A DNA stretch of 64,000 nt from Cycas panzhihuaensis (GCA_023213395.1 CM041465.1:151349741-151413740); one strand, 5' to 3'. Positions 20,201 through 41,300 are shown, counted from the first letter of the stretch. Translations and numbers: made by a program. Notes: a model not told the origin generated them from the letters alone.

Positions 20201-21420
20201 TTTTAGTGAAGATCAAAATCTTGTTGGATTGTCCACCTCCAAGAAATCTAATAGAATTGAGGAGTTTCACAAGACTCAATAACTTCTACTAGAAGTTCAT
20301 CTTGGGTTTTGCAGTGGTAAGATTGCCCTTGAATGAATTAACTAGAAATTTAGTAGCATTCCTTTGGACTAATCTTCAATAGGAAGCTTTTGAAGAATTG
20401 AACAAAGGTTTTGCTCAATGCTAGTCCTTGTGTCACCCAATGTGAAACTACCTTTCAAGATCAGAATTTATGCATTAGGATATGGTATGGGTGTTGTATT
20501 GACATAGTAAGGCAAATTGGTGGCATATCATAGTGAAACCTTTACTGGAGTTGTGAATAATTGCTCAACTTACGATCACAAAATATATGTCATTATGCAG
20601 GCAATAAAGCATTAACAGCAGTACATTTATAGCAAAGAAACAATGATCCATTATGATCATCAACTATTGTAATATCTACAAACCCAAACAAAGTTGGTGA
20701 ATAATCAATAATTGAAATGGGTGACCTATCTATAGTAGTTCCATCTCATAATTAAATACAAGGATGGGGTGGTGAACAAAGTCATAGATTTCTTGTCACA
20801 ACCTCTTGTTGCAGATTTCATGAATGTCATGGATGGCACAAACTTTGGAAAAGAAGCATGGAGAGACTTGTACACCACACATTCTGATTATGTAGAGATT
20901 GTAGCTAAACTCCACAAGAATTCAATACCAATTGAAGAAAAATGGAGAGATTACCACTTCAAGTTAAATCAATTGTACAAATTGAGACAACTTTGTGTGC
21001 CCATAGGAGGAAGTAGCACTTATTGATTTGAGAAGTGCATCACTCTTACATAACAAGTTACTTTGGGGTGAAAAAAATTTTGGCAAATCTGCAACGTTAT
21101 TTTCATTGGTCAAAAATGTTGCAAGATGTTACATGATTCACAAAAGGATGCATGTTATGTTGCATCTCCAAGCCAAACACCAAGAATCTTGGAAAGCACT
21201 TGCCATTGCCGGTGCCTTCGAGACCATAGAAATTGATTTCCATGGACTTTGCACATGTATGGTTGCATTTTGGGTTGCCATTTGCCATTGTTTCTGATTG
21301 TGATAGTAGTTTTTTGAGTTCATTTTGGACATCATTACGGGCCATGATGGATACCAAGCTCCAAAAATCTATAGCTTTCCATTTGCAAATTGATGGACAG
21401 TCTGAAGTGGTTAATCAGAT

Positions 21421-24400
21421 TGTAGCATTCCAAAATCTAGTCAAAACTATGCCATGTAACCATTCAAATTGAAGGCCTCTGAACAAGGATTCCAACAGTT
21501 CAGACGAAAGTCAATTCCGACATCTCAATCAAAAGTTATGGCCATTTAAAGTTAGCCTGCCAGTTTTTGAAGAAGTTCTGGCCGACTTCTATTTGAGCAG
21601 TTTTAAGAAGAATATTACCCAATCTGGCCGACTTCTATTACTTTCGTTTGGCCGCCTATTTAAGGAGGATTTGCGGCCTCATTTCAACATCGTCGGAGGT
21701 TCTTTTGTCGCGCATTTTCGGTTCTAGGGCTGCAATTAGCTCACCCATTTGGGGGCTGCAGTTTGGAGGGTTCCTCGCCTCGAAGAGGGAAGCTCACGTC
21801 TTCAGGAAAGACAGCATCTAGTTATTGTTTTTGTGGATTATTACTTGTATTTTTGAGAAAAATTGCTATAAAAGTAGAACTAGATCGCTACAAGTGGTAT
21901 CAGAGCTTCGTTTCGAGGGGAAAGGGTAGAGATAAAAGCTTAGAAAGGTCAAAATTTCCCCAAGGAAGTAGAAAGTAATTGAGGTTAGGGAAAAGCTCAT
22001 TCACAAGAAGATGGCAACCCAATCTAGAACCTTAGGAAAAAATTGAAGGTGTATCAGAATTAAACCAGAGCATAAGGGCTCTAACAATCCTAATCCAAAA
22101 GTTACTAGCAAAACGGATCAAGCAACACAAAATGTGTCAGGTAGATGGATGGATAACACCACCACATCAGGGATAGATCAAATGGATCAAGAAAATCAAG
22201 GAAATGAGACCAAGATATTCGATGGACGAGCTTACGAAAGGAGAACTCCCAACATGGATAATGGATGGAAAGGGACAGGATTATCTTTGGAAAAATTCGA
22301 TCCAGATGTATATCTAAGAATATCACTAATTGGGTCTTACAAATGGAGAACTATTTCAAGGTCTATAACTCCACAGCTAAGGAAAAGATGGAAATAGCAT
22401 CCTTACACTTAAACGGAAGGGCGTTAAGATGGTACTATTGGTGGAAAAAGATGAACTTACCAATGCAATGGACACAGGAGAATCTAAGAGCGAGATTAGT
22501 AAAGCAATATGACGATTCTTGGAATCTGATTACTTTTCTCGCTTAACACAATTACATCAAGAAGGAACAATCCAAGAGTACACGTACGCCCAAACGCTAC
22601 AATGTATGGTCTCAAAAAAGATACCGCAGAAATGTTTACTAGAGACTTATATTAGTGGATTGAAAAATCGATCAAATTTAGAGTTAAAGCAGCAGATCCA
22701 CCACAACTCCAAGTAGCAATTCAAATAGCAAGGAATGTGGAGGCAGAACTTAGAGATAGCAAATCGATATATACAAGGAAATATGGGCTACCAACATATC
22801 ATACCCAGAATCCTAATGGGGCCAAATCGGAGACAAAAGCAAACCCCCCATTAGCTATAAGAAATACAATAGAAAGCTCGGGAACAACAAAAGAGGAACA
22901 CATAAGGAAAGGGACGTGCTTCAAGTGTGGAGAGAAATGGAATAAGGAACACTGGTGCCTATCAAAAAAGGTTTTCATGATCAATAGCGATGATGCAGAA
23001 ATACCAGAAGCAGCACAAGAAGAAGTAGAAGACCGGAGCGTAGGAAGGCAGGAAAATGAACTTTTGGAAGTGGATACAGGGAATGTCCAAACATCCTTGC
23101 AGGCCATTACAGGGCGACTAGTATCCCCGCAAACCCTAAGATTACAAGGACAAATCAAGGGGAGACTGGTATCAATCTTGGTAGATAGTGGGAGTACACA
23201 CAATTTTATAAACAAGGCATCAGCAGAAAAACTGGGATTACAAGTGAAATCACTTAATACATTCTAGGTGTCAATAGCAAATGGGAGAACAACGCTGTGT
23301 GGGGGATACTGCAAAGACACAACTCTCCAGATCAATGATTACAAGGTCACAACTTGTATGTTTGCCATGCCCATAGGTGAAGTGGACGTAGTTCTGGGAA
23401 TTCAATGGCTACAAACGCTGGGTAACATTGTTACCAATTATATGACAAGATTTATGTGTTTAGAGCAAGAGGGACGCAAATACCGACTGCAAGCCTCAGC
23501 CACACCTCCAGTTCAGCTCATATCATCTCACATAATATCATGTTACAAAGTAGAAATAAAGAACGTTCCTCCACAGATTCAGGCAATCTTAGAAGAACAT
23601 CAAGGAGTTCTTGAAAAACCCCAAGGACGGCTACTAAAAAGGGAATTGGAACAGGCAATAGATCAGTTAAAATTGCCACCAGAAAGCAAAATCCGCAATA
23701 TCTTCCACATGTCTTGTTTAAAGAAAACGTTGGGCGAAAAGGAGGCTCCACAAACGAATTTACCAATACTGGATGAAGAAGGAATGATGATAGTGGAACC
23801 TAAGGGAATATTGAAGATTAGGGACAAGAATTTACGATCCAGGATAATGAAAGGATATCTCATCAAATGGAAGACATTGGAGCTTAAAGATGCAACGTAG
23901 GAGTCTGAAGAATGGATGCAGAAAAATGGGCCATTACTAATGCTTTGAGGGCAAAGCATGTTTTGAAGGGGAGGGACTTGTAGCATTCCAAAATCTAGTC
24001 AAAACTATGCCATGTAACCATTCAAATTGAAGGCCTCTGAACAAGGATTCCAACAGTTCAGACGAAAGTCAATTCCGACATCTCAATCAAAAGTTATGGC
24101 CATTTAAAGTTAGCCTGCCAGTTTTTGAAGAAGTTCTGGCCGACTTCTATTTGAGCAGTTTTAAGAAGAATATTACCCAATCTGGCCGACTTCTATTACT
24201 TTCGTTTGGCCGCCTATTTAAGGAGGATTTGCGGCCTCATTTCAACATCGTCGGAGGTTCTTTTGTCGCGCATTTTCGGTTCTAGGGCTGCAATTAGCTC
24301 GCCCATTTGGGGGCTGCAGTTTGGAGGGTTCCTCGCCTCGAAGAGGGAAGCTCACGTCTTCAGGAAAGACAGCATCTAGTTATTGTTTTTGTGGATTATT

Positions 24401-24450
24401 ACTTGTATTTTTGAGAAAAATTGCTATAAAAGTAGAACTAGATCGCTACA
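21421..24450 (+). mobile_element. Element C: young non-autonomous chromovirus derivative (gag-PR joined to integrase C-terminus/chromodomain; RT, RH and INT core deleted)
   Basis: 472-bp LTRs 21421-21892 and 23979-24450 with one mismatch seen. PBS 21895-21906; PPT 23965-23976. CFKCGEKWNKEHWC knuckle, ILVDSGSTHNF PR, junction EQAID|QLKLPPESKI, chromodomain YLIKWKTLELKDAT. Confidence 0.95.
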
Positions 24451-24452
24451 AA

Positions 24453-24775
24453 GGTAATGGTCTACTTGGTGGGGGGCCCTCTTCACTAACACCTCGAGGT
24501 TCTGGTGTAACGGTTCGTTACAAGTGGTATCAGAGCCAAGACCCGGGTTCAAATCCCGTGGGGGCAACACCGCTTATGGGGGCGGTGGGGTGACGCGCCA
24601 AACGTCGCCGATGCGCAAAACGCCGTCGTAGCCGGGGCCTGTGGGGCGCATGAACGCCGGTGAAAGCGGGGCTAGGCGGGGCTAGCCCGTTTGAACCGGG
24701 GGGGAGGTAATGGTCTACTTGGTGGGGGGCCCTCTTCACTAACACCTCGAGGTTCTGGTGTAACGGTTCGTTACA
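24453..24775 (+). mobile_element. 323-bp mini-TRIM (70-bp identical LTRs, tRNA-iMet PBS, GC-rich non-coding interior, PPT)
   Basis: Identical repeats 24453-24522 and 24706-24775 (GGTAA...TTACA). PBS TGGTATCAGAGCCA 24525-24538. G-rich PPT ~24698-24705. Confidence 0.93.
24503..24556 (+). promoter_or_regulatory. tRNA-type (type 2) Pol III internal promoter: A box in LTR, B box after PBS
   Basis: A box TGGTGTAACGG 24503-24513; B box GGTTCAAATCC 24546-24556 inside T-arm stem CGGG/CCCG; tRNA-like spacing of 43 nt start to start. Confidence 0.75.
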
Positions 24776-27700
24776 CAGATAGTAGTACCGTTATCGCAAA
24801 TGTACAACCTGAGTCATCCAAAATCTTGGGATGACAACTTACCCTCTATACGTCATAGCTATAATTGGGCAATCCACAATTCAATAGAACAAACATTGTT
24901 TGAGGCTTTGGACTGGGCATTTTCTCCAAACTTCCTACATGGAAAGAAGAGCAAGCTCAAGTACAAGCATCAAGATTCATAGAACATGTCAAGATGGTAC
25001 ATAAGCCGATACAAGAGGTGTTAACAAAATTCCAACAAAGATACAAGGAGAGACATGAGAAGCAAAGAGTCCATCATCAGTGTCAAGTTGGAGATGAAAT
25101 ATGGTTGCATCTATCCAAGGAGAGATTCCAAAGCCCAAATTGAAAGATTAAGTGCATTTAATATGATTCATATACTATTGTGGAGGTCATTGGAAACATT
25201 GCTTTTTGATTGGATCTACCACTGCAGTTAGGATTGCATCTAGTTTTCAATGTGGACAACCTGAAATTATATGAACCTTGAATGTTGGAGGAAGATTCAT
25301 ATGCCAAAGTAGAACCTTCTGAAGATTTATAATCATACTTGCCAAATCCAGTTGCAGAAGACATAATCCTGCAAGCTGATCGTAAAGAGGTCACTATATT
25401 CTAGGATGACAATACCCACCAGCAACAAAATGGTACACTACAGAGTAGATTGCAGAAAATTTTCTGCACTTACAGGGAAAAATGATGTAGGCCATAATCT
25501 CCTAAGCGGGGAGGGATGGTCCCAATTGAACTGCAAGATACTGTAACTACATTGCAAATTGCTACAACTGCATTTTTTCAACTGCTTGATTAAGTAAAAT
25601 TAGCGAAACCTTAGAGATTAGTTAGTAACAAACAAGTAGGTGTAGAAACTACTTTAATTGTTTTCTTTTGGTATAAATTGTTGAAGTTCTTTGCTTGGAA
25701 AGGGGCATAACTGCCTGTAGCTGGAAGGTATTCGAATGGGAATGGTCCTAAATTGCTGGAAATTGCATCATCGTTGAAAGCGTTTTGTTCTCAAGATTTG
25801 TAAAACCCTTTTCAATAAGCAATAAATGACAACTATTTGATCCTTTCATCTCTGTTTACAAGATGATTGTTTCTCTATTTGGTCTTTTGTTTCATTTTTT
25901 TCGCTCTGTTTTGTTTGCTTTTACATTCTACAACACTGTATGAAAGGAGAACGGATCACAGCGGCTTTGTAGTGGTGAATACCACTTCCACTGCGTATTC
26001 CTCGCTCCTCTATAATGCTAAAAATAACCCAACCCACTTGATTGAATTTGTATTTGCACCTATCTTTGCCTATTCATCTCTCTGTATTCCCTTTCATGGT
26101 CGAATCCTGTGGCTATCTCAAGAATAAGCAGCAGAAGCTGGAAATTTTTGACTATTGTAGAATATCACTTAAAACATACTAGCTAAGGATCGCCTTGGGC
26201 TTAGAAGAGGATTTATTCGCACCGTTGCGAAGGTCGTGGATGAATCAGAGTCGGTTAAGTGTAAAGCGTTAGGGATTGGCGTAGAGTAGCAGATGATTTT
26301 AACCATCTTAGGATCGTGCAAGCTAATTCTTCGGGGGAACCCGCGCCTATGTGCTGGTGAGTTCATTCTATCCTCATATGAGTATGCAACTATCTCTTGT
26401 TTCATGAAGAAGTCAGTTTCTATGGAGACCCTCGACTGTCGTCTGCAACCTATGTAGAGGAGCAGAAGTTCAAGAGTCCTCAGTCGCATCCTTGGTTAGC
26501 ACGTGTTTCCTTCTGTGAGTGGCCTGGTGGTGATATATCGCCGAATTAGAGTAGGGTAGAAATTGCAGGCAGCACGTAGAATACGTCTATTCTTCGATGT
26601 GAAAGCAAGCTGGCATGTCGCTACATGGGACCCCGCAGGAGGAGAGGCAGAATTAGCCATCGAATTCACCATTCGTCAGCTATTGGTCGACAACCATAGC
26701 CAGTTAAGCAAGTTCAAACTCTCTTGAATTAAATACTTTATTATGATAAATAATTTAGAATCGAATATTTTTAATAGAATATTCTTTCATAATTAAGGGG
26801 GTTTATTTATTTATTTATTTTAAGTATAGAGATAGTTTAATTATTTATTATATTTTAATACGAGTGCACCAAAACTAACTTAAAATTGTCTTTGAAAAGT
26901 GTTTGATCATGTTAAAATAGTTTTCTTAGTTGTAATTTTCTTTCATAGACTAATAGCTCGTTTTCTGCAAAGGGGAGTAAACTCTAATCAAATGTTCTCT
27001 AGGAACATTCTAATTCAATTTAAAATATTTTAGTTTTAATCTATCTAAAAACTAGTTGTTCTTCTAATAAGTTGCCATCTATTAGCTTTAGTAATTATTA
27101 GTTGGCAAGTAGTTTTGTTAATTTTATGTTTAAAAAGACTCAGAGAGTAGTTTTTGACATATTCCATAAAGGTCTTGTTAAGTACCTTTGTAAATTTTAT
27201 TTTAAAGGATTTAAGAGTAGAAATTTCTTCTTGCCCTTTTTTCTTCTTATCTATTTTCACATCCCCTCCTCTTTGTAGTAGTCACATAAATTATTCTATC
27301 CTCTGGTAGATCCCATTAGTCAAATAGATTCATTTATATTTCTCGCTTTTTAATTCATTTTTCTTTTAGTTAGTAAATTAGTTTTCTATTCTAATTGTTC
27401 TTGCAAGCATTGTTTTAGTAGTTTGTTTTAGTCAAACTCTTACCTCAACAACTCTCCTTGAGCCATCTACAAAAAGTAAGCTAGGAAAGTTGATAGGTTC
27501 TATTGGTTTAAAAATATCATAAAATAGAATACTAAAAATTAATAGCTCTAGGTGTTCGTCATCACCACCTCTAGTCGCAAATGACCCCAAACATGCCTCC
27601 CAAAAGAGCAGTACTTCAATTAGCATCTAACTCAGAGTTAGAAGCCTCCAACATTGCCACTAAGGTGTCAAACGTAGAAGTAAACTTACATGAACTAGAT

Positions 27701-32985: not shown

Positions 32986-35900
32986 TGAATTGACCCCATT
33001 AAAGTTTGACCAACGTCTATGTACTTGCTGTGGTTGACTTCTAGAAGTGATTCTGAGCGCAAATCTCTATGTTCTATCCGACCTCATTAGGTCCTAGTTT
33101 GGGTGCCTATAAATAGGGATCTTTGGGGTTATTCCCCATCATCAATTTTTGAAGTCTTTCCCTCTCATTTTCAGCCTTAAGGCTATTGCCAATTTTCGGC
33201 CTTAGGGCTGCATTTCTGAGGAGGATTCCTGCCTCGAAGGGCTTGGTGATTGTTGCAGGCTATGTTGGTAATTCTGGAACTCTTATTTATAATTTTGTAT
33301 CTATTTGGCATCATATTTTGGCACTTGTAATTGAATTATATTTGGAAATATTCATCTATACCATACTCTTGTATATATAATTGCCAGTTTGTGTTCTATT
33401 ATTTGTGAAAGTTGAGCTCTATTCTGTCTTATTTCTGGTTTTGGGTTAAATACTGTTACAAGTGGTATCAGAGCTTCATTCTGAAGCAAGATTTTAAGAA
33501 GATAATTTGGGCAGGGGGAAGCAAAAGTTTGACCCGCCCTCCCACCTTAAGAATTTTGAAAAGATCTAGAAAGATCAGACTGCCAAATAAAATGCCGATA
33601 TCCCCAGAAGCAGAGGAACAAATGGCAGAGACCATGACAACGATCATGCAGGAATATACAGCAGATCAAGAACCTTAATGTGAAGTTAGAAAAGCAAGAA
33701 ATAACCCATCCTAAAGTAGAACAAAATTAGGATTTAGATCAAGACTTAGACCAAGGGAACCAGGGAGGAAGGTTTGAAGAAGGATTCATATTTCTGTGGA
33801 GGAACATAAAGTCACAAAGAATTCCAATAAACACAAAGATCGCACTAGAAAAGTTTGATCCAGAAAAGACACGTGACATAAGATCATGGTTACTCCAGAT
33901 GGAGACATACTTCATAGTCAACCAGACACTAGAGACAGATACGGTCCCCATCACCTCTCTACATCTATATGGATGAGCTTTAAATTAGTATTGTTGGTGG
34001 AAAAAGATGCAAGGGCCTTAGCAACAAGAATGGAGACACTTTCGAATAGCCATCATCAATCAATACGAAGATTCATGGGCTATGGATTATTTCGCCCAGT
34101 TGATAAGGCTACAACAGATCGGATTAGTTCGAGAATATACAGAATAATTTTAGATGATCCAATGCCTGATTATGTCAAGCATTCCTTAGGAATGCCTCAG
34201 GGAGACCTACATAAGTGATTTAAGGCACCCATAAGATTCCACGTATTAGCACAACAACACGGAGCATTGGAAGAAATCATAAAACATGCCAGATGTGTCA
34301 AAGCCGAACTCAAAGAAACCAGGCCAACCTAGGTGCGCAGAACAGAATTTACACCACCACCTAACACAAACTAGAATAGGTCAGGAGTTAAGGCGGATGC
34401 TCCTCTTGCAATCAAGAGTACAACAGAAAATCCTATGTGAGAAGAACACATGAAGAAAGGTACCTGTTTCAAATGCGGAGGAAAGTGGAACTGAGAGCAC
34501 CAGTGTCTAGGAAAAAAAGTATTCATGCTAAATAACAAAGAGTTAGAGATACCAAAACAAGTGGAAGAAAATGTAGTCCCAGACAAGGAAGGAAACAATG
34601 AACAAATCGAAGCCAAGCTAGATGAATTACTTGAAGTCGATACAGAGAATGTTCAGATCTTTCTACAAGCTATAACAGGACAAAGTACCGCACGTTAGAC
34701 ATTATGATTCGAGGGGATGCTAAAAGGAGCTCCAATAGCAGTGTTGATGGATAGTGGGAGCGCCCACAACTTTATTAACAGACCAACAACCCAGAAGTTA
34801 GGACTAAAAGTGGAGCCCTTGAAAACCTTCCAAGTATCAATCACTAATGGAAAAACAACACCTTGCAGAGGGTTTTGCAGGAACATCAACTTGAAAATCG
34901 GTGAGTACTCTTTGAATTCCAATATGTTTGCAATGCAAATAGGTGGAGTCATTGTAGTTCTAGGGATTTAGTGGTTGCAGACATCAGGTAATATAGTCAC
35001 CAACTATATGACCAGGGTTATTTGCTTCCGAATAAATGGCACAAAATACATATTATGTGGACAAAAAAATCCACCAATACAACTAGTGTCTTTCCATAGA
35101 ATGGAAAAGATCATGCGGAAGAAAGCTCCTACATACATAGTCTCATGCCACAAAATTGAAATCCAAGAAATACCAATGGAGATCCAACACATTTTGGATG
35201 ACTATAAACAAGTATTTGAAGAGCCGAAGGGATTACCCCCAATGAGAGAAACCCAGCATGCTATAGATTTAGTCTTAGGAGCCACACTAGTGAACATAAG
35301 GCCATAAAGGCACCCATACCACATGAGGAAGGAGATCGAAAACATAACAACAGATTTATTTTCACAGGGCCACATTCAGAGTAGTATAAGTCCGTTTGCA
35401 TCCCTAGTTGTAATCAGCCCCAAGAAGGATGGAACAGTTAGGATGTGCATGGATATCCTATTCCCAGGATCAATGACTTGCTAGATGAGATACATGGGGC
35501 AAAATATTTTTCCAAGATTGACCTTTGGTCAGGCTACCAATAGATTCAGATAAAATAAGAAGATGTTCACAAGACAACCTTTCAAACTCATGAAGGGCTA
35601 TTCGAATTCAAAGTGATGCCGTTTGGACTAACTAATGCTCCAGCAACATTCTAGGCCACCATGAACTTGGCATTCAAAGAATTTTTAAGGAAGTTTATAC
35701 TAATCTTTTTTGATGACAGTCTGATTTACATCAAAACTTGGAGCCAACACTTGGCACATCTTTGATTAGTCTTGCAAATTTTGGCAAATAGATTATTCTT
35801 TGTAAACAAGAAAAAGTGCTCTTTTGGCTGATAGGAACTGGAATACCTCAGTCATATAATTATCCTAGAAGGAATCAAAGTTTATCCCAAAAAGGTCTAG

Positions 35901-38371
35901 GCTATAGTAAATTGGCTAGCACCAAAGAATGTTGCAGGAGTTCGCAGTTTTTTGGGTGCAGTAGGATACCTTAGGAAATTCATAAAAGGATACGCCAACA
36001 TAGCGGCCCCACTTACAGACCTAACCAAGAAGGACGCATTTGCATGGAACTCAATGGCCAACAATGCTTTTGAAGAACTAAAGGATGCAATGGTAAGAGC
36101 TCCAGTCCTAACAATTCCAGATTTTTCAAAACCATTCAATTTGGAGTGCAATGCATTAGGGTTTGGCATAGGAGCCATCTTATTACAAGACGAAAGACCT
36201 ATAGCATATGAAAGCAGGAAGCTGAACAATAGAGAAAAGCTAAAACCCATTTACGACAAGGAGATGCTAGCTATAATGCACACAATCCATCAGTGGAGAC
36301 AATATTTGCTCGGGAGCCCATTTCAGGTACGAATGGATCACAACAGCCTCAAGTACTTCTTAAGTCAAAAGACGTTGCCAGATGAATAACAAAAGTGGTT
36401 GAGCAAATTACAATCATTTGATTTTACTATCGTGTACAAAAAGGGCAAAGAAAATGTCATAGCAGATGGTCTCTTAAGGATCCCAGAGGAATCTCAGGAG
36501 CAACCAACATTATAGACAATCTCAGTGGCTACCCCGACATGGCACGAGACACTAAGAAAAGAGTACAACAACGACCCAAGATATAAGCAGTTGATAGATA
36601 AAACAAGATATAATATTGTAGGAAGCTCACTCTACACCTATAGTAGGCTACACGGGGATTGACAAGACATATAGAAAGGTAAGAGCTTCTTTTTATTGGA
36701 AAGGATTAAAAACAAATGTTCAGAAATTTCTGGTAGAATGTGATACCTATCAAAGGAACAAGATTGAATGCATAAAAATGCCAGGGTTACTCCAGCCATT
36801 ACCAATTTCAAAACAAAAATGGGATGAGATATCTATGGACTTCATAATAGGATTACCTTGTTCAGAAGGGATGGATGCAATTCTAGTCATAGTAGATCGC
36901 CTTACAAAATATGGCCACTTCAGAGGATTGAAATCAACAACTAAAGCCAACGAAGTTGCAGAGTTATACATGAAGGAGATCCATCATCTACATGGTTTTC
37001 CAAAGGCAATTGTAAGTGACTATGACCCAAAATTTACTAGTAAATTTTGGCAAGATCTTTTCGAAATCATCGGTACAAAACTCAAGATGAGCATAGCTTA
37101 TCACTCACAAATAGATGGGCAAATAGAAATTTTGAATAAATGCCTAGAAGGATATTTGAGGAACTTCTGCTCAAACAAACAAAGACAATGGCACCAATGG
37201 TTGCACTTAGCAAAATGGTGGTACAACACCACCTGCCACTCCTCAACAAAAATGATGCCTTTGTAGGCCCTATACAGATACCAACCACCATCCTTTTTAA
37301 CTTGGAACAGACCATCATAGGTCCAGGTAGTTCAAGAACATTGGAAGCAAGTAGAGGAGACTATCAATAGACTGAGAGATAATTTAGCGATGGCACAAAA
37401 TAGAATGAAGCAACAATTAGATTTGAAATGCTTTGAAAGACAATTCAAAGCAGACGATTGGGTCTTTTTGCATCTGTAGCCATACAAATAGGTCTCCTTA
37501 CAGAAAACAAGCAACCAAAAGCTTGCACCTAGGTACTTTGGGCCATACGAAATCACTACCAAAATAGGTGAAGTCGCATATCATTTAAGGCTCCCAAAAG
37601 GTGCAAAAATTCATAACATCTTTCATGTTTTCTATCTAAAAAAGAAGGTTGGAGATGAAATAGTACCTCAGTCCAACCTCTTGGAGCTCAACGAAGAAGG
37701 AAAAATGATGCTAGAACCAAAAAGAATCCTGCAAACCCGCACCAGATCCCTCAGGTCCAGACAAATCAAAGAACACTTGATCAAATGGAAAAACCTGGAT
37801 GACGAAGATGCCACGTGGGAAAACGATGAATGGATAAAACAATTTCCGCATTTACTAGTGCTTTGAGGGCAAAGCACAATTTCGAAGGGGGGGACATGAA
37901 GTGACCTCATTAGAGTTTGGTCAACCTCTATGCACTTATTGTGGCTGACTTCTAAAAGTGATTCTAGGCACGAATCTCTATGTTCTGGCCGACCTCAATA
38001 GGTCCTAGTTTGGGCACCTATAAATAGGGATCTTTGGGGTTATTCCCCATCATCAATTTGTGAAGTCTTTCCTTCTCATTTTCGGCCTTAAGGCTGCTGC
38101 AGATTTTCGGCCTTAGGGCTGCATTTTTTAGGAGGATTCCTGCCTCGAAGGGCTTGATGATTGTTGCAGGTCGTGTTGGTAATTTTGGAACTCTTATTTA
38201 TAATTTTGTATCTGTTTGGCATCATATTTTGGCACTTGTAATTGAATTATATTTGGAAATATTCATCTATACCATACTCTTGTATACATAATTGCCAGTC
38301 TGTGTTCTATTATTTCTAAAAGTTGAGTTCTGTTCTGTCTTATTTCTGGTTTTGGGTTAAATACCATTACA
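32986..38371 (+). mobile_element. Element F: near-complete 5.4-kb chromovirus (Reina-like size and organisation), same lineage as C
   Basis: 475-bp LTRs 32986-33460 and 37897-38371; PBS 33463-33474; PPT 37884-37894; TSD CATAG/CATAC. Confidence 0.95.
33592..37866 (+). pseudogene. gag-pol of F (gag, PR, RT, RH, INT, chromodomain)
   Basis: CFKCGGKWN*EHQC, LMDSGSAHNF, LIFFDDS, FNLECNALGFGIGAIL, ISMDFIIGLP, HLIKWKNLDDEDATWE; stops, frameshifts and short deletions. Confidence 0.92.
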
Positions 38372-41300
38372 CATACTCTACTTGCTATTGTTCAATAGTA
38401 GGAATTACCTTTTTTTTGTTGTATGTAACCCAAGGACTATGTTGACAAGGAATTCACAACTTCTAGTGGTCAGTGAACCTTTTCTCAAAACTCACTTGTT
38501 GGATAGATGTTGCCGACAATGATTGCGCGAATAGTTGTTACCTATGGTTCAGTCCAATCCTAGTGACCTAACAAAACTAAGGGTGATCCAATCTCTTGTC
38601 TCTGATACCACTATAGTGGGCCCAACTCAAATGCAACAAACAAAGATAATATTCTAGTAGATCATATTAATATTCCACAATATTTCATAGCAAATTACAT
38701 ACATTTACAATAGGATTTCCTCACAAAATATTATTCAACAAATAATGGATACTTACAACAGATAATCTCTACAATATTCAATTCAACAGACATATAAATC
38801 ATTGATACATATATTGATAACAATAATGGAGCAATAATAATAATAGAATAACAATAATAGAACCTGATACAGTATTTGGTAGTTGCAACCCTCTTCGAGG
38901 TGGGAGTGACCCTCCAATAGGCATAAGGCCCTAATGGCACGAGGCCATTATACCAAAATGATAATAAATTCTTCGAGATTGATTTTTCAAATGATCAAGG
39001 CTTCTCTATTTAGAGCCTTTAAAACCCACTCCTAATTTTCCCTCTAAAAGATCAACTTCATAATGAAATATAATATATGATTCTTCCTTTAATCCTCTTA
39101 AAGAACCAAGTTCATAATAATAATTTTTCTCTATAGAAAATTGACTTCTTCCTTATTTTTGGGAACACTACACAATGCCATATCCTAATTAGGTTGGAGG
39201 ATCAACACATGATAGCATTTTATACATGTTAGGGGTACTACATGCTATTCAGACATTCCAATATGCTAGTTATATTTTAGGTCACCATGAATAAAGTTTT
39301 TGCAGCAGTCCTTAGAAAATTTGTTCTAATATCCTTTAATGATATCCTCATCTATTTTAAATCATGGAGTGAGCATCCAAGGCATGTAAACATTGGGCTA
39401 ACTACTTTGAAGGAAAAGTAGTTCTACGCAAAATGCTCCAAATCATGCTAGCCTGACTACCTCATTGATGAGCTTTCTAAAGGAAAATTCATTTACATGA
39501 AGCATAGAAGTAGATAAAGAGTTCGAGGCACTTAAATAAGAAATGACAACAACTTTATTCCTAGCCATGTCAAGCTTCAATGATCCATTTGTTTTAGAAT
39601 TTGATTCATCTAGCATCGACATTGGAGTGATCTTAATATAAAATAACCGCTCAACAGCATTCGAAAGAATGGAGTTAAATGATAGAAAGAAAAGGCTTAC
39701 CACTTATTATAAGGAATTGTTAGCAATAATACATGCCATGGAGAAATGGTGGCAATACCTACTAGGAAGTAAATTCATTGTAAAAACAAACCAGAGTGGC
39801 TTCAAATACTTGTTGCAACAACCCAACATGTTATACAAGTAAAGGAAGTGGATAGACAAGATACAAGCTTTTGACGTTGAAATTGTATCCAAAAAGAGGA
39901 TTGGAAATGTAATTGCAGATGCCCTATCAAGAAAGCATGATGAAGCTTTAATATTAGCCATAATGGTCATTGAATCAAGATGGGTGAAGGAAATCTAGAA
40001 TCGATATTGCGAGCCTCCAAAAACCATAATGATCATTACTAGAATATAGGCAAGAACACAAAAACCCAGCTAGGAGTACATAAATGGAATTATTTTCTAA
40101 AACAATTTGCTCTTCATTCTACTAGGATCACCTTCGATAAGCAAAATACTGTGAAAATTCCAAGATGCACTAGCAGCATGACATGTTGGAAGACTAAAAG
40201 TTTATACCAACATCATAAACACCTCCTTTTAACTAAGTATGGCAAGGGCAACAAAAAAGTATGTGATAAAATGTGAAACTTGTCAATGATAGGAATCCAA
40301 AACTATACCTTCCTTATATCACATTAAAAATAGGAAGACATATCCATGGACTTCATTACAACTCTTCCCCCCTTTGATGGGAAGGATGCAATATTTGTGG
40401 TGGTCAATAGACTAACCAAATATGATCACTTCATGTCAATCAATTTAATGGACAAAGCACCTCAGATTGTAGAAATATTGACAAAGGAGGCCTGCTATCT
40501 CTATGGGAAAATAAAAAGAATTGTATAAAAAAAGGATCCTAAATTCATAAGAAATTTCTAGCAAGATTTTTTGTAAATAATAGTTACTACAATCAACATG
40601 AGCCCTGCTTATTACTTGCAAATTGATGAACAAACATAAAGGGCAAACAAGTGTCTAGAAGGTTACCTAAAAAACTACACGGGTGATAAGCAAAATAGAT
40701 GGGTCAAATGGCTACACCTGGATAAATTTTCGTAGAACATAACTGACCATGTTGCAAAAAAAATGACATTGCTTATGACATTATATGGGTACCCAACCCC
40801 ATCAATAAAAGGCTACTTAAACCTAGATACTAAGATCCAAGAAATAAAATCAAACTTGGAGGAATCTCAAGACATAATTAGAACCCTAAAAGACAACTTG
40901 GCAATGACAACAAACAAAAAGAAACAATAGGCTGAGCAACATAGAATAGAGAAAATAGTTTCAATAGGAGACATGGTATTCATCTGCTTGCAACTATATA
41001 AACAACTTACACTTAAAAGCAAAGATAAACAGAAACTTGTCTTATTGTTTTCCAACCTGTACAAAATTAAGAAAAAGATAAGCAACATAGCATACTTCCT
41101 CGATCTACCTACCAAAGGAAGGATGCACGATGTGTTCCATGTGCCATGTCTAAAAAAGGAATCGTGAAATACAAGGTCACACCGAATAGAACTTCATGTG
41201 CTTGATGAGAAAGGCAAGGTATACCTTGAGCCAAAAGGCATTTTAGAAGAAAAATAAAGGCAATTCTAGTCCAAAAAATAAATAGAATACCATATTAAAT

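Follow-up and report, generated by a model that had tools for sequence, protein, structure and literature searches.

TRIMs pose the question of how they are transcribed; many of their LTRs are too short to hold a normal promoter together with termination signals. Cassandra, Helenus and Ajax (TRIMp3) are TRIMs with tRNA- or 5S-derived Pol III promoters, and in all of them the boxes are located inside the LTR (PMC10886601). The 2024 screen by Kojima, in which the canonical TRIMs are termed 'TRIMp2', compared LTRs only, and in plants Helenus is known from Selaginella only (PMC10886601). TRIMp3 (Cassandra, Helenus) is the nearest described kind to the element analysed here, a non-coding element of 323 bp (about 320 bp) from Cycas panzhihuaensis, to which we refer as the mini-TRIM. 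It extends from 24452 or 24458 to 24775 of a 64-kb stretch of DNA that was analysed as a whole and is called the window below. The preliminary description of this DNA recognised no described family of such a kind. That statement is not borne out, since the Pol III TRIMs Helenus, Ajax and Cassandra have been described, though with both boxes within the LTR (PMC10886601). A description of A and B boxes split across the LTR/PBS junction in TRIMs was not found in the literature searched, and neither were the junction strings of the mini-TRIM nor the initiator-tRNA anticodon-arm string discussed below.

Structure, abundance and arrival of the copy

The mini-TRIM is delimited by direct repeats at 24452-24522 and 24705-24775, which are 71 nt each and 100% identical in the repeat comparison of the window, and which enclose an internal domain of 182 nt. 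Its coding capacity is nil (the longest stop-free stretch is 81 codons), its G+C content amounts to 61% vs 37% for the window, and no TATA box was found in its LTR. The LTR proper is probably 65 nt long (24458-24522, TG...CA) rather than 71 nt: its start is placed at 24458 because one Logan contig begins exactly there and because the LTR of the related elements begins with TG right after the purine tract, and its 3' end is marked by contigs that diverge after 24523. The six extra bases at the left end (AGGTAA, 24452-24457) are found again between the purine tract and the 3' LTR, at 24705-24710, and we infer that they go back to mis-primed plus-strand synthesis. The 3' LTR proper occupies 24711-24775, and 23 contigs continue into unrelated sequence past its last base. 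A spacer of 2 nt (AG) separates the 5' LTR from the PBS TGGTATCAGAGCC at 24525-24537, which is of the type that usually serves as the primer site for initiator-Met tRNA in plants, and the polypurine tract GGGGGGGAGG at 24695-24704 adjoins the 3' repeat; all these features are given on the + strand. The preliminary description of an LTR element with a PBS, a PPT and no TATA box was essentially accurate, all of these parts being present. The two LTRs that it called identical are indeed so.

The copies of the family were followed in Logan contigs. Sampled 31-mers of the 323 bp are present at a fraction of 0.52-0.92 in 19 runs, which come from at least nine coded organisms and 12 studies, and 601 bases spanning the element and its flanks were compared with the contigs of four runs. 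Thousands of contigs match the mini-TRIM and the neighbouring LTR; the depth over the host flank from 24783 is 0-34. Immediately past 24775 and past 24523, dozens of contigs diverge into A+T-rich sequences that are unrelated to each other, which indicates many insertion sites and an LTR terminating in ...ACA. Because these other copies stop exactly at the LTR, with unrelated sequence beyond it, the mini-TRIM family is mobile. What stands at 24458-24775 is one member of a very abundant family of non-coding TRIMs, and the assignment to the TRIM type by the preliminary description is borne out by the terminal repeats, the PBS, the PPT, the lack of coding capacity and the dispersed, multi-copy nature of the family; what this copy lacks from the usual set of TRIM features is a 5-bp target-site duplication of its own. 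No further copies of the mini-TRIM were found within the 64-kb window. For a copia RT fragment of the window the best matches reach only ~54% and are scattered across all land plants. The differences between copies are mainly C>T and G>A changes at CpG. The core of the B box described below varies little among the contigs and the CpGs around it decay, the hairpin at the LTR end is altered by CpG transitions in other copies, and a G>A change at 24545, which breaks a stem pair of the T-arm, makes up the majority of the depth in two runs. None of the runs listed as carrying the family is recorded as RNA. Two runs presumed to be RNA give the same relative depth of the neighbouring LTR vs the mini-TRIM as the DNA runs do, and so are probably DNA as well.

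The absence of an own target-site duplication is an exception limited to this copy. Directly upstream of it lies a non-autonomous LTR element of about 3 kb, element A (21421-24450, + strand; gag/protease-only), which has 472-bp LTRs with one mismatch and a protease remnant, and a single A (24451) stands between the two elements. The sole target-site duplication, CAGAT, brackets element A and the mini-TRIM jointly (21416-24780): its left copy is at 21416-21420 and its right copy at 24776-24780 (+ strand). Deletion of 21421-24780 restores the integrase reading frame of the Ty3/gypsy element that hosts them. It would appear that element A and the mini-TRIM are two cDNAs which were linked by their ends before a single integration, with no standard solo integration of the mini-TRIM. 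The LTR of element A ends with ...ACA, followed by AG and then by the PBS, as in the mini-TRIM, and this likeness of the LTR ends suggests a common helper. In all four runs the contig depth of the LTR family of element A (window 24300-24450) is roughly 5-20 times that of the mini-TRIM, and several contigs on this LTR skip 44-47 nt at 24369-24417.

A- and B-box-like motifs and the related families

The preliminary description had proposed a consensus A box at the end of the LTR, overlapping a hairpin, and a consensus B box in a T-arm just after the PBS, at the spacing of a tRNA gene. The consensus GGTTCRANNCC has a single match on both strands of the 64-kb window (128 kb), namely GGTTCAAATCC at 24546-24556, which is held by a T-arm-like hairpin with a 4-bp stem (CGGG/CCCG, 24543-24559, + strand); it begins 21 nt after the start of the PBS, outside the LTR. 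The A-box-like motif TGGTGTAACGG (24503-24513, + strand) has no mismatches to the degenerate, tRNA-invariant consensus TRGYNNARYGG. It departs from TRGCNNAGTGG, the classical A box, at three of the nine specified positions, and of the two forms it fits the degenerate one only. The loose form, which was chosen after the sequence was known, has six matches in 128 kb, two of them being the two LTRs of the mini-TRIM. The offset from A to B is 43 nt in the window copy, which equals the distance from T8 to G52 in tRNA numbering without nucleotide 17. The proposed tRNA-gene spacing is therefore present, and the pair of boxes exceeds chance in the window. The 7-bp hairpin TGTAACG-GTT-CGTTACA was confirmed at 24506-24522 (+ strand); this palindrome at the LTR end is specific to the mini-TRIM family and is absent from the related families.

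An exact 25-mer across the LTR-PBS junction gave no match in metagenome contigs. The pattern PBS-N4-12-GGTTCRANNCC retrieved 38 metagenome loci, and among them three groups align with the mini-TRIM over the last ~45 nt of the LTR. Group i (L002/L028, L003 and L019/L033) has LTRs of 116-138 nt and an internal domain of ~55 nt that is almost filled by the PBS, the B box and the purine tract. Group ii consists of nine A+T-rich loci, such as L006 and L034, the latter being a clean TRIM of 264 bp with 65-70-nt LTRs, a TGTT start and a TATA box, and group iii of six G+C-rich loci, such as L016. As the B box in the 38 loci was fixed by the design of the search, the new evidence is in the A-box block, the upstream block and the spacing only. 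An A-box-like 11-mer, for which the search pattern did not ask, is found in all three groups as TGGTGTAATGG, TGGTGCAGTGG or TGGCTAGGTGG; these 11-mers deviate from the strict consensus at 1-3 positions and from the tRNA-invariant form at 0-2. The offset from A to B is 43-46 nt in 15 of the 17 TRIM-type junctions, and the two spacers that make it up shift in opposite directions (25+18, 22+21, 23+21/22).

The conservation is confined to certain blocks. When one natural representative from each of four families was compared pairwise, the identity was 0.62 in the upstream block CAC.TAAC.., 0.67 in the T-run and 0.68 in the A-box block, and it was 0.23 in the 5' part of the LTR, 0.29 in the LTR-end spacer and 0.27 downstream of the B box. 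In the mini-TRIM the upstream block (CAC.TAAC.. and then G.GTT.T), which would be the region of the predicted start, is located at 24483-24503 (+ strand; identity between families 0.62-0.67). One related family has a TATA box ~25 nt upstream of this conserved start block. The hosts appear to be diverse: a lipase gene flanking L002 is closest to gymnosperm proteins among the named matches, and for a transporter exon flanking L005 the identity to angiosperm proteins is 85-91%. Being homologous, the four families have to be read as one origin with conservation, not as four independent events. The mini-TRIM belongs to an old seed-plant TRIM group that keeps an A-like 11-mer, a 12-nt PBS and a B box in a fixed arrangement, with the 11-mer in the last third of the LTR and the B box 6-10 nt past the PBS. 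The recurrence in three diverged families of the A-like box at the LTR end, the PBS and the B box, at 43-46 nt, speaks for the layout that the preliminary description had proposed. Because distant seed-plant relatives have the same layout, it probably has a function, which may be that of an internal Pol III promoter.

Several loci retrieved by the search have a composition of their own. At L003:11-326 four tandem units of 64-65 nt (with 107 nt between the first two) each consist of the last ~45 nt of the TRIM LTR, the PBS and a few bases, and a B box follows the last unit only. L022:8100-8360 and L017 are the same sequence on opposite strands, a TRIM/copia recombinant at the primer site, in which a copia-type LTR, a PBS, a B box, a purine tract, a complete 116-nt TRIM LTR, a second PBS and a copia leader follow each other; the copia gag lies ~0.9 kb beyond this leader, which has no B box. 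L018:1-564 and ten other VFQN01 loci represent a different LTR element of 564 bp with a PBS and then GGTTCGATCCCC; its internal region contains two more T-arm-like strings and no convincing A box at tRNA distance. L027:1274-2740 (- strand) is an autonomous copia element with gag, a zinc knuckle and a Pol beta-barrel, in which the PBS is followed by 4 nt and then by GGTTCGAATCC directly 5' of the gag ATG, an arrangement that may be due to chance.

The T-runs have to be judged in the light of these relatives. This copy of the mini-TRIM has no T4 on the + strand, the first one being at 24920 in the flank, which agrees with the preliminary description; the avoidance of T4 that it deduced does not hold. 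An element with 61% G+C is free of T4 in 63% of shuffles (p=0.63), and the internal regions of the A+T-rich group ii are not depleted (7 T4 seen vs ~3.7 expected), hence T4 depletion was discarded as evidence in either direction. The window copy reads TTCT at 24500-24503, and a C>T change at 24502, found in nearly all contig depth of the four runs, gives TTTT at 24500-24503 and 24753-24756. TTTT just 5' of the A box is therefore present in most copies, as it is in all related families, where the run is flanked by G/C. By its own terms the preliminary description counted T4 runs in other copies against avoidance, and this claim accordingly fails. T4-T5 is also found within U3 in one related family. 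In group iii an insert of 11 nt parts the T-run and the upstream block from the A box, thus the T-run belongs with the upstream block. These two can pair with each other (CCAAAACC-loop-GGTTTTGG), perfectly in group i and with 1-2 mismatches elsewhere.

Similar sequences precede the PBS in other elements. A Ty3/gypsy element of roughly 5.4 kb at window 32986-38400, with RNase H and integrase and with its PBS at 33463, has a similar U5 in which GGTTTTGG...GTTACAAG stands before the PBS, and it has no B box; it is a candidate relative of the helper of the mini-TRIM. The group i block CCTGTGGGTTTTGG is a candidate complement, at 13 of 14 positions, of the anticodon arm of plant initiator tRNA. The string TTGGGCCCAC just upstream of the PBS in an element of the window with its PBS at 38598-38610 (- strand) presumably resembles this match to the anticodon arm.

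Mimicry of the tRNA fold by the LTR/PBS junction, with the PBS in the position of the anticodon arm, is not supported. Neither ARAGORN nor Rfam (E<=10) called a tRNA, a 5S rRNA or a ribozyme on the mini-TRIM, nor did they on the related loci. A relaxed ARAGORN hit, 'tRNA-???' at 24498-24566, was rejected as being at the background rate (31 matches in the window, 73 in 300 shuffles). D, anticodon and acceptor stems could not be drawn around the boxes, and there is no cloverleaf. The fold of 24486-24575 is of unremarkable stability (z = -1.3), and neither a conserved helix nor covariation emerged when 18 junctions were folded jointly with RNAalifold. As there is neither conserved structure nor covariation, the blocks would act as primary sequence, like promoter boxes.

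What the conserved blocks may do

We consider it plausible, though unproven, that the boxes of the mini-TRIM form a split type-2 (tRNA-type) internal Pol III promoter, and we give this reading of the motifs somewhat less than an even chance. TFIIIC would bind both boxes, and transcription would start ~10-17 nt 5' of the A box, in the conserved block within the 5' LTR. The A box would be part of R/U5 and the B box part of the leader, so both would lie within the transcript and would be passed to every new copy. Since the boxes would be carried in the transcript, an LTR of 65 nt would need no upstream promoter. Only an LTR followed by a PBS and a B box would be competent, which is the 5' LTR or the inner LTRs of tandem arrays. 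The G/C-flanked TTTT before the A box could serve as a terminator in the 3' LTR and would leave a very short R, on the condition that it is read through at the 5' copy. The Pol III reading is the most likely one in that it would explain the most with a single known mechanism: the matches to the boxes, their spacing, the absence of RNA structure, and a minimal LTR combined with a minimal internal domain. Cassandra, Helenus and Ajax provide a precedent for it (PMC10886601). It is favoured by the sole B box in 128 kb with an A-like motif exactly 43 nt upstream, by an LTR that is 65-71 nt long, G+C-rich and TATA-less, and by the identity of the A box, the T-run and the upstream block (0.62-0.68 vs 0.23-0.29 elsewhere). 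Its weak points are the T4 ~10 nt past the predicted start, the insert of group iii and the lack of a tRNA call. The T4 between the predicted start and the A box should terminate Pol III transcription at ~13 nt when it begins in the 5' LTR, the 11-nt insert fits a start that is set by the upstream block and not by the distance to the A box, and the likeness to the gypsy U5 means that at least the block with the T-run may be a signal for reverse transcription. That the whole TRIM group across gymnosperm-like and angiosperm hosts consists of Pol III elements, with the promoter split by the LTR boundary, is still more tentative; in such elements the PBS would take the place of the anticodon arm and the LTR would be able to shrink to about 50-70 nt.

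It may instead be that the blocks are cis-acting signals for reverse transcription or packaging and that the TRIM owes its transcripts to Pol II or to host genes that are read through into it. The blocks around the PBS would then contact the primer tRNA or the Gag/RT of the helper, as is the case with the Ty1 boxes and the A-rich loop of HIV-1, and the likeness to A and B boxes would be due to tRNA ancestry or to coincidence. Such a role accounts well for the T-run and the upstream block: the gypsy element of the window has the same U5 layout of GGTTTTGG...GTTACAAG and PBS, the T-run stays with the upstream block and not with the A box across the 11-nt insert, and the match of CCTGTGGGTTTTGG to the initiator-tRNA anticodon arm (13 of 14 complementary, presumably, and taken as a lead only) points in the same direction. 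Additionally, one family has a TATA box at the distance typical of Pol II, and the copia recombinants at the PBS show shared replication. However, replication signals do not account for the block after the PBS, which agrees in sense orientation with every specified position of the B-box consensus and is preceded by a variable-loop-like AGAC/AGGTC, nor for a distance from A to B that is held at 43-46 nt via compensating indels. The copia partner has no B box in its own leader, and a TATA-less LTR of 65 nt leaves ~30 nt for a Pol II promoter. We regard this explanation as the main rival, possible but rather unlikely. The B box may also be an extended PBS, complementary to the T arm of the initiator tRNA; judged by eye, the sense orientation and the AGAC/AGGTC would seem to fit a B box better.

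The motif after the PBS could also act in the RNA as a mimic of the T-loop, by which a tRNA-binding factor, processing of the RNase P/Z type or docking of the primer tRNA would be served without any DNA promoter. The window copy does have a hairpin with a 4-bp stem and a 7-nt loop (TTCAAAT), and the two closing G-C pairs of the T-loop are present in every B box. However, the relatives keep only 2-3 stem pairs, RNAalifold gives no helix and no covariation, the stem is disrupted by the G>A change at 24545 in most of the depth of two runs, and the fold of 24486-24575 has ordinary stability (z = -1.3), thus a T-loop mimic is improbable. We hold it similarly improbable that the resemblance is owed to chance or to a tRNA or SINE fragment that was once captured and has no function. 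The silence of the tRNA detectors speaks for this, as do the loosely matched A box with its consensus defined post hoc and the B-box-like string before the gag start of the autonomous copia L027, which may well be chance; it is hard to reconcile with a single B-box match in 128 kb that has an A-like motif at tRNA spacing, or with an A-box block that is conserved across families which in the rest of the LTR are no more alike than random sequence, and that spans gymnosperm-like and angiosperm hosts. B boxes alone suffice as TFIIIC sites in other eukaryotes, and the boxes might bind TFIIIC without productive transcription ('extra TFIIIC' sites) and act as a chromatin boundary vs silencing or as a targeting mark. 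The mini-TRIM is a CpG-rich element in an A+T-rich genome, with inter-copy variation that is mostly CpG decay, which would suit such a role. Apart from this general knowledge of B boxes nothing specific favours it, and it explains neither the adjacency to the PBS nor the distance to the A box; we consider it very improbable.

If the Pol III reading is true, a promoter that straddles the junction explains the minimal LTRs, the silent solo and 3' LTRs and the tiny domain made of PBS, B box and PPT, and the question of how the smallest TRIMs are transcribed would be answered. Some canonical TRIMs would then move into the Pol III class proposed in 2024, and thousands of potential TFIIIC/Pol III sites would be scattered through large plant genomes, with a bearing on tRNA-gene prediction, chromatin boundaries and small-RNA production. 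Should the boxes be signals for reverse transcription, the conserved blocks would be new cis elements of an old TRIM group all the same.

Comparison with known elements

Tiny plant TRIMs have been described before. SMART/FRetro129 (292 bp with 85-bp LTRs; PMC3281118) and other very small TRIMs such as CcaRetroS9 (233 bp with 52-bp LTRs; PMC4717578) share with the mini-TRIM the size class, the non-coding nature and a PBS of the iMet type. Compared by description only, the SMART LTR differs in its ends (TGTT...AACA) and its TATAAAA box from that of the mini-TRIM, which has TGG...ACA and no TATA box; L034, with its 264 bp, TGTT start and TATA box, is closer to the description of SMART than the mini-TRIM is. 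With the tRNA-derived SINEs the mini-TRIM has in common A and B boxes at tRNA spacing, short length, abundance and the absence of coding capacity. SINEs, however, lack LTRs, a PBS and a PPT, use the LINE machinery and begin with a contiguous tRNA-related head, and the mini-TRIM, having LTRs, a PBS and a PPT, is not one of them. Nor is it a retrozyme, as no hammerhead ribozyme was found in the mini-TRIM by Rfam (E<=10).

Among the Pol III TRIMs, Cassandra resembles the mini-TRIM in being a plant TRIM of an old lineage with an initiator-Met PBS and with an internal Pol III promoter in its transcript (PMC10886601; PMC10853983). The promoter of Cassandra is of type 1 (5S) and lies wholly within an LTR of 240-350 bp. 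A 5S rRNA-like domain was not found in the mini-TRIM (Rfam, E<=10), which is not a Cassandra element. If its boxes do work as proposed, the mini-TRIM would be a third design of a Pol III-driven LTR element beside Cassandra and Helenus/Ajax.

Helenus shares the most with the mini-TRIM: it is a short non-coding element of ~300 bp with a PBS, a PPT, proposed tRNA-type A and B boxes and T4 in the LTR. The two differ in the placement of the boxes. Helenus has a tRNA-like unit with both boxes wholly in the LTR, as is characteristic of TRIMp3, and this unit is often called by tRNAscan, whereas in the mini-TRIM the A-like box is in the LTR, the B box is internal, the PBS is between them and no tRNA is called. 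The mini-TRIM has no sequence similarity to Helenus-1_SMo, the sole plant member, beyond the type of the PBS. Helenus-1_SMo is 325 bp long and its LTR has a TTTT downstream of its start, thus the problem of read-through at the 5' LTR is common to the whole class of Pol III TRIMs.
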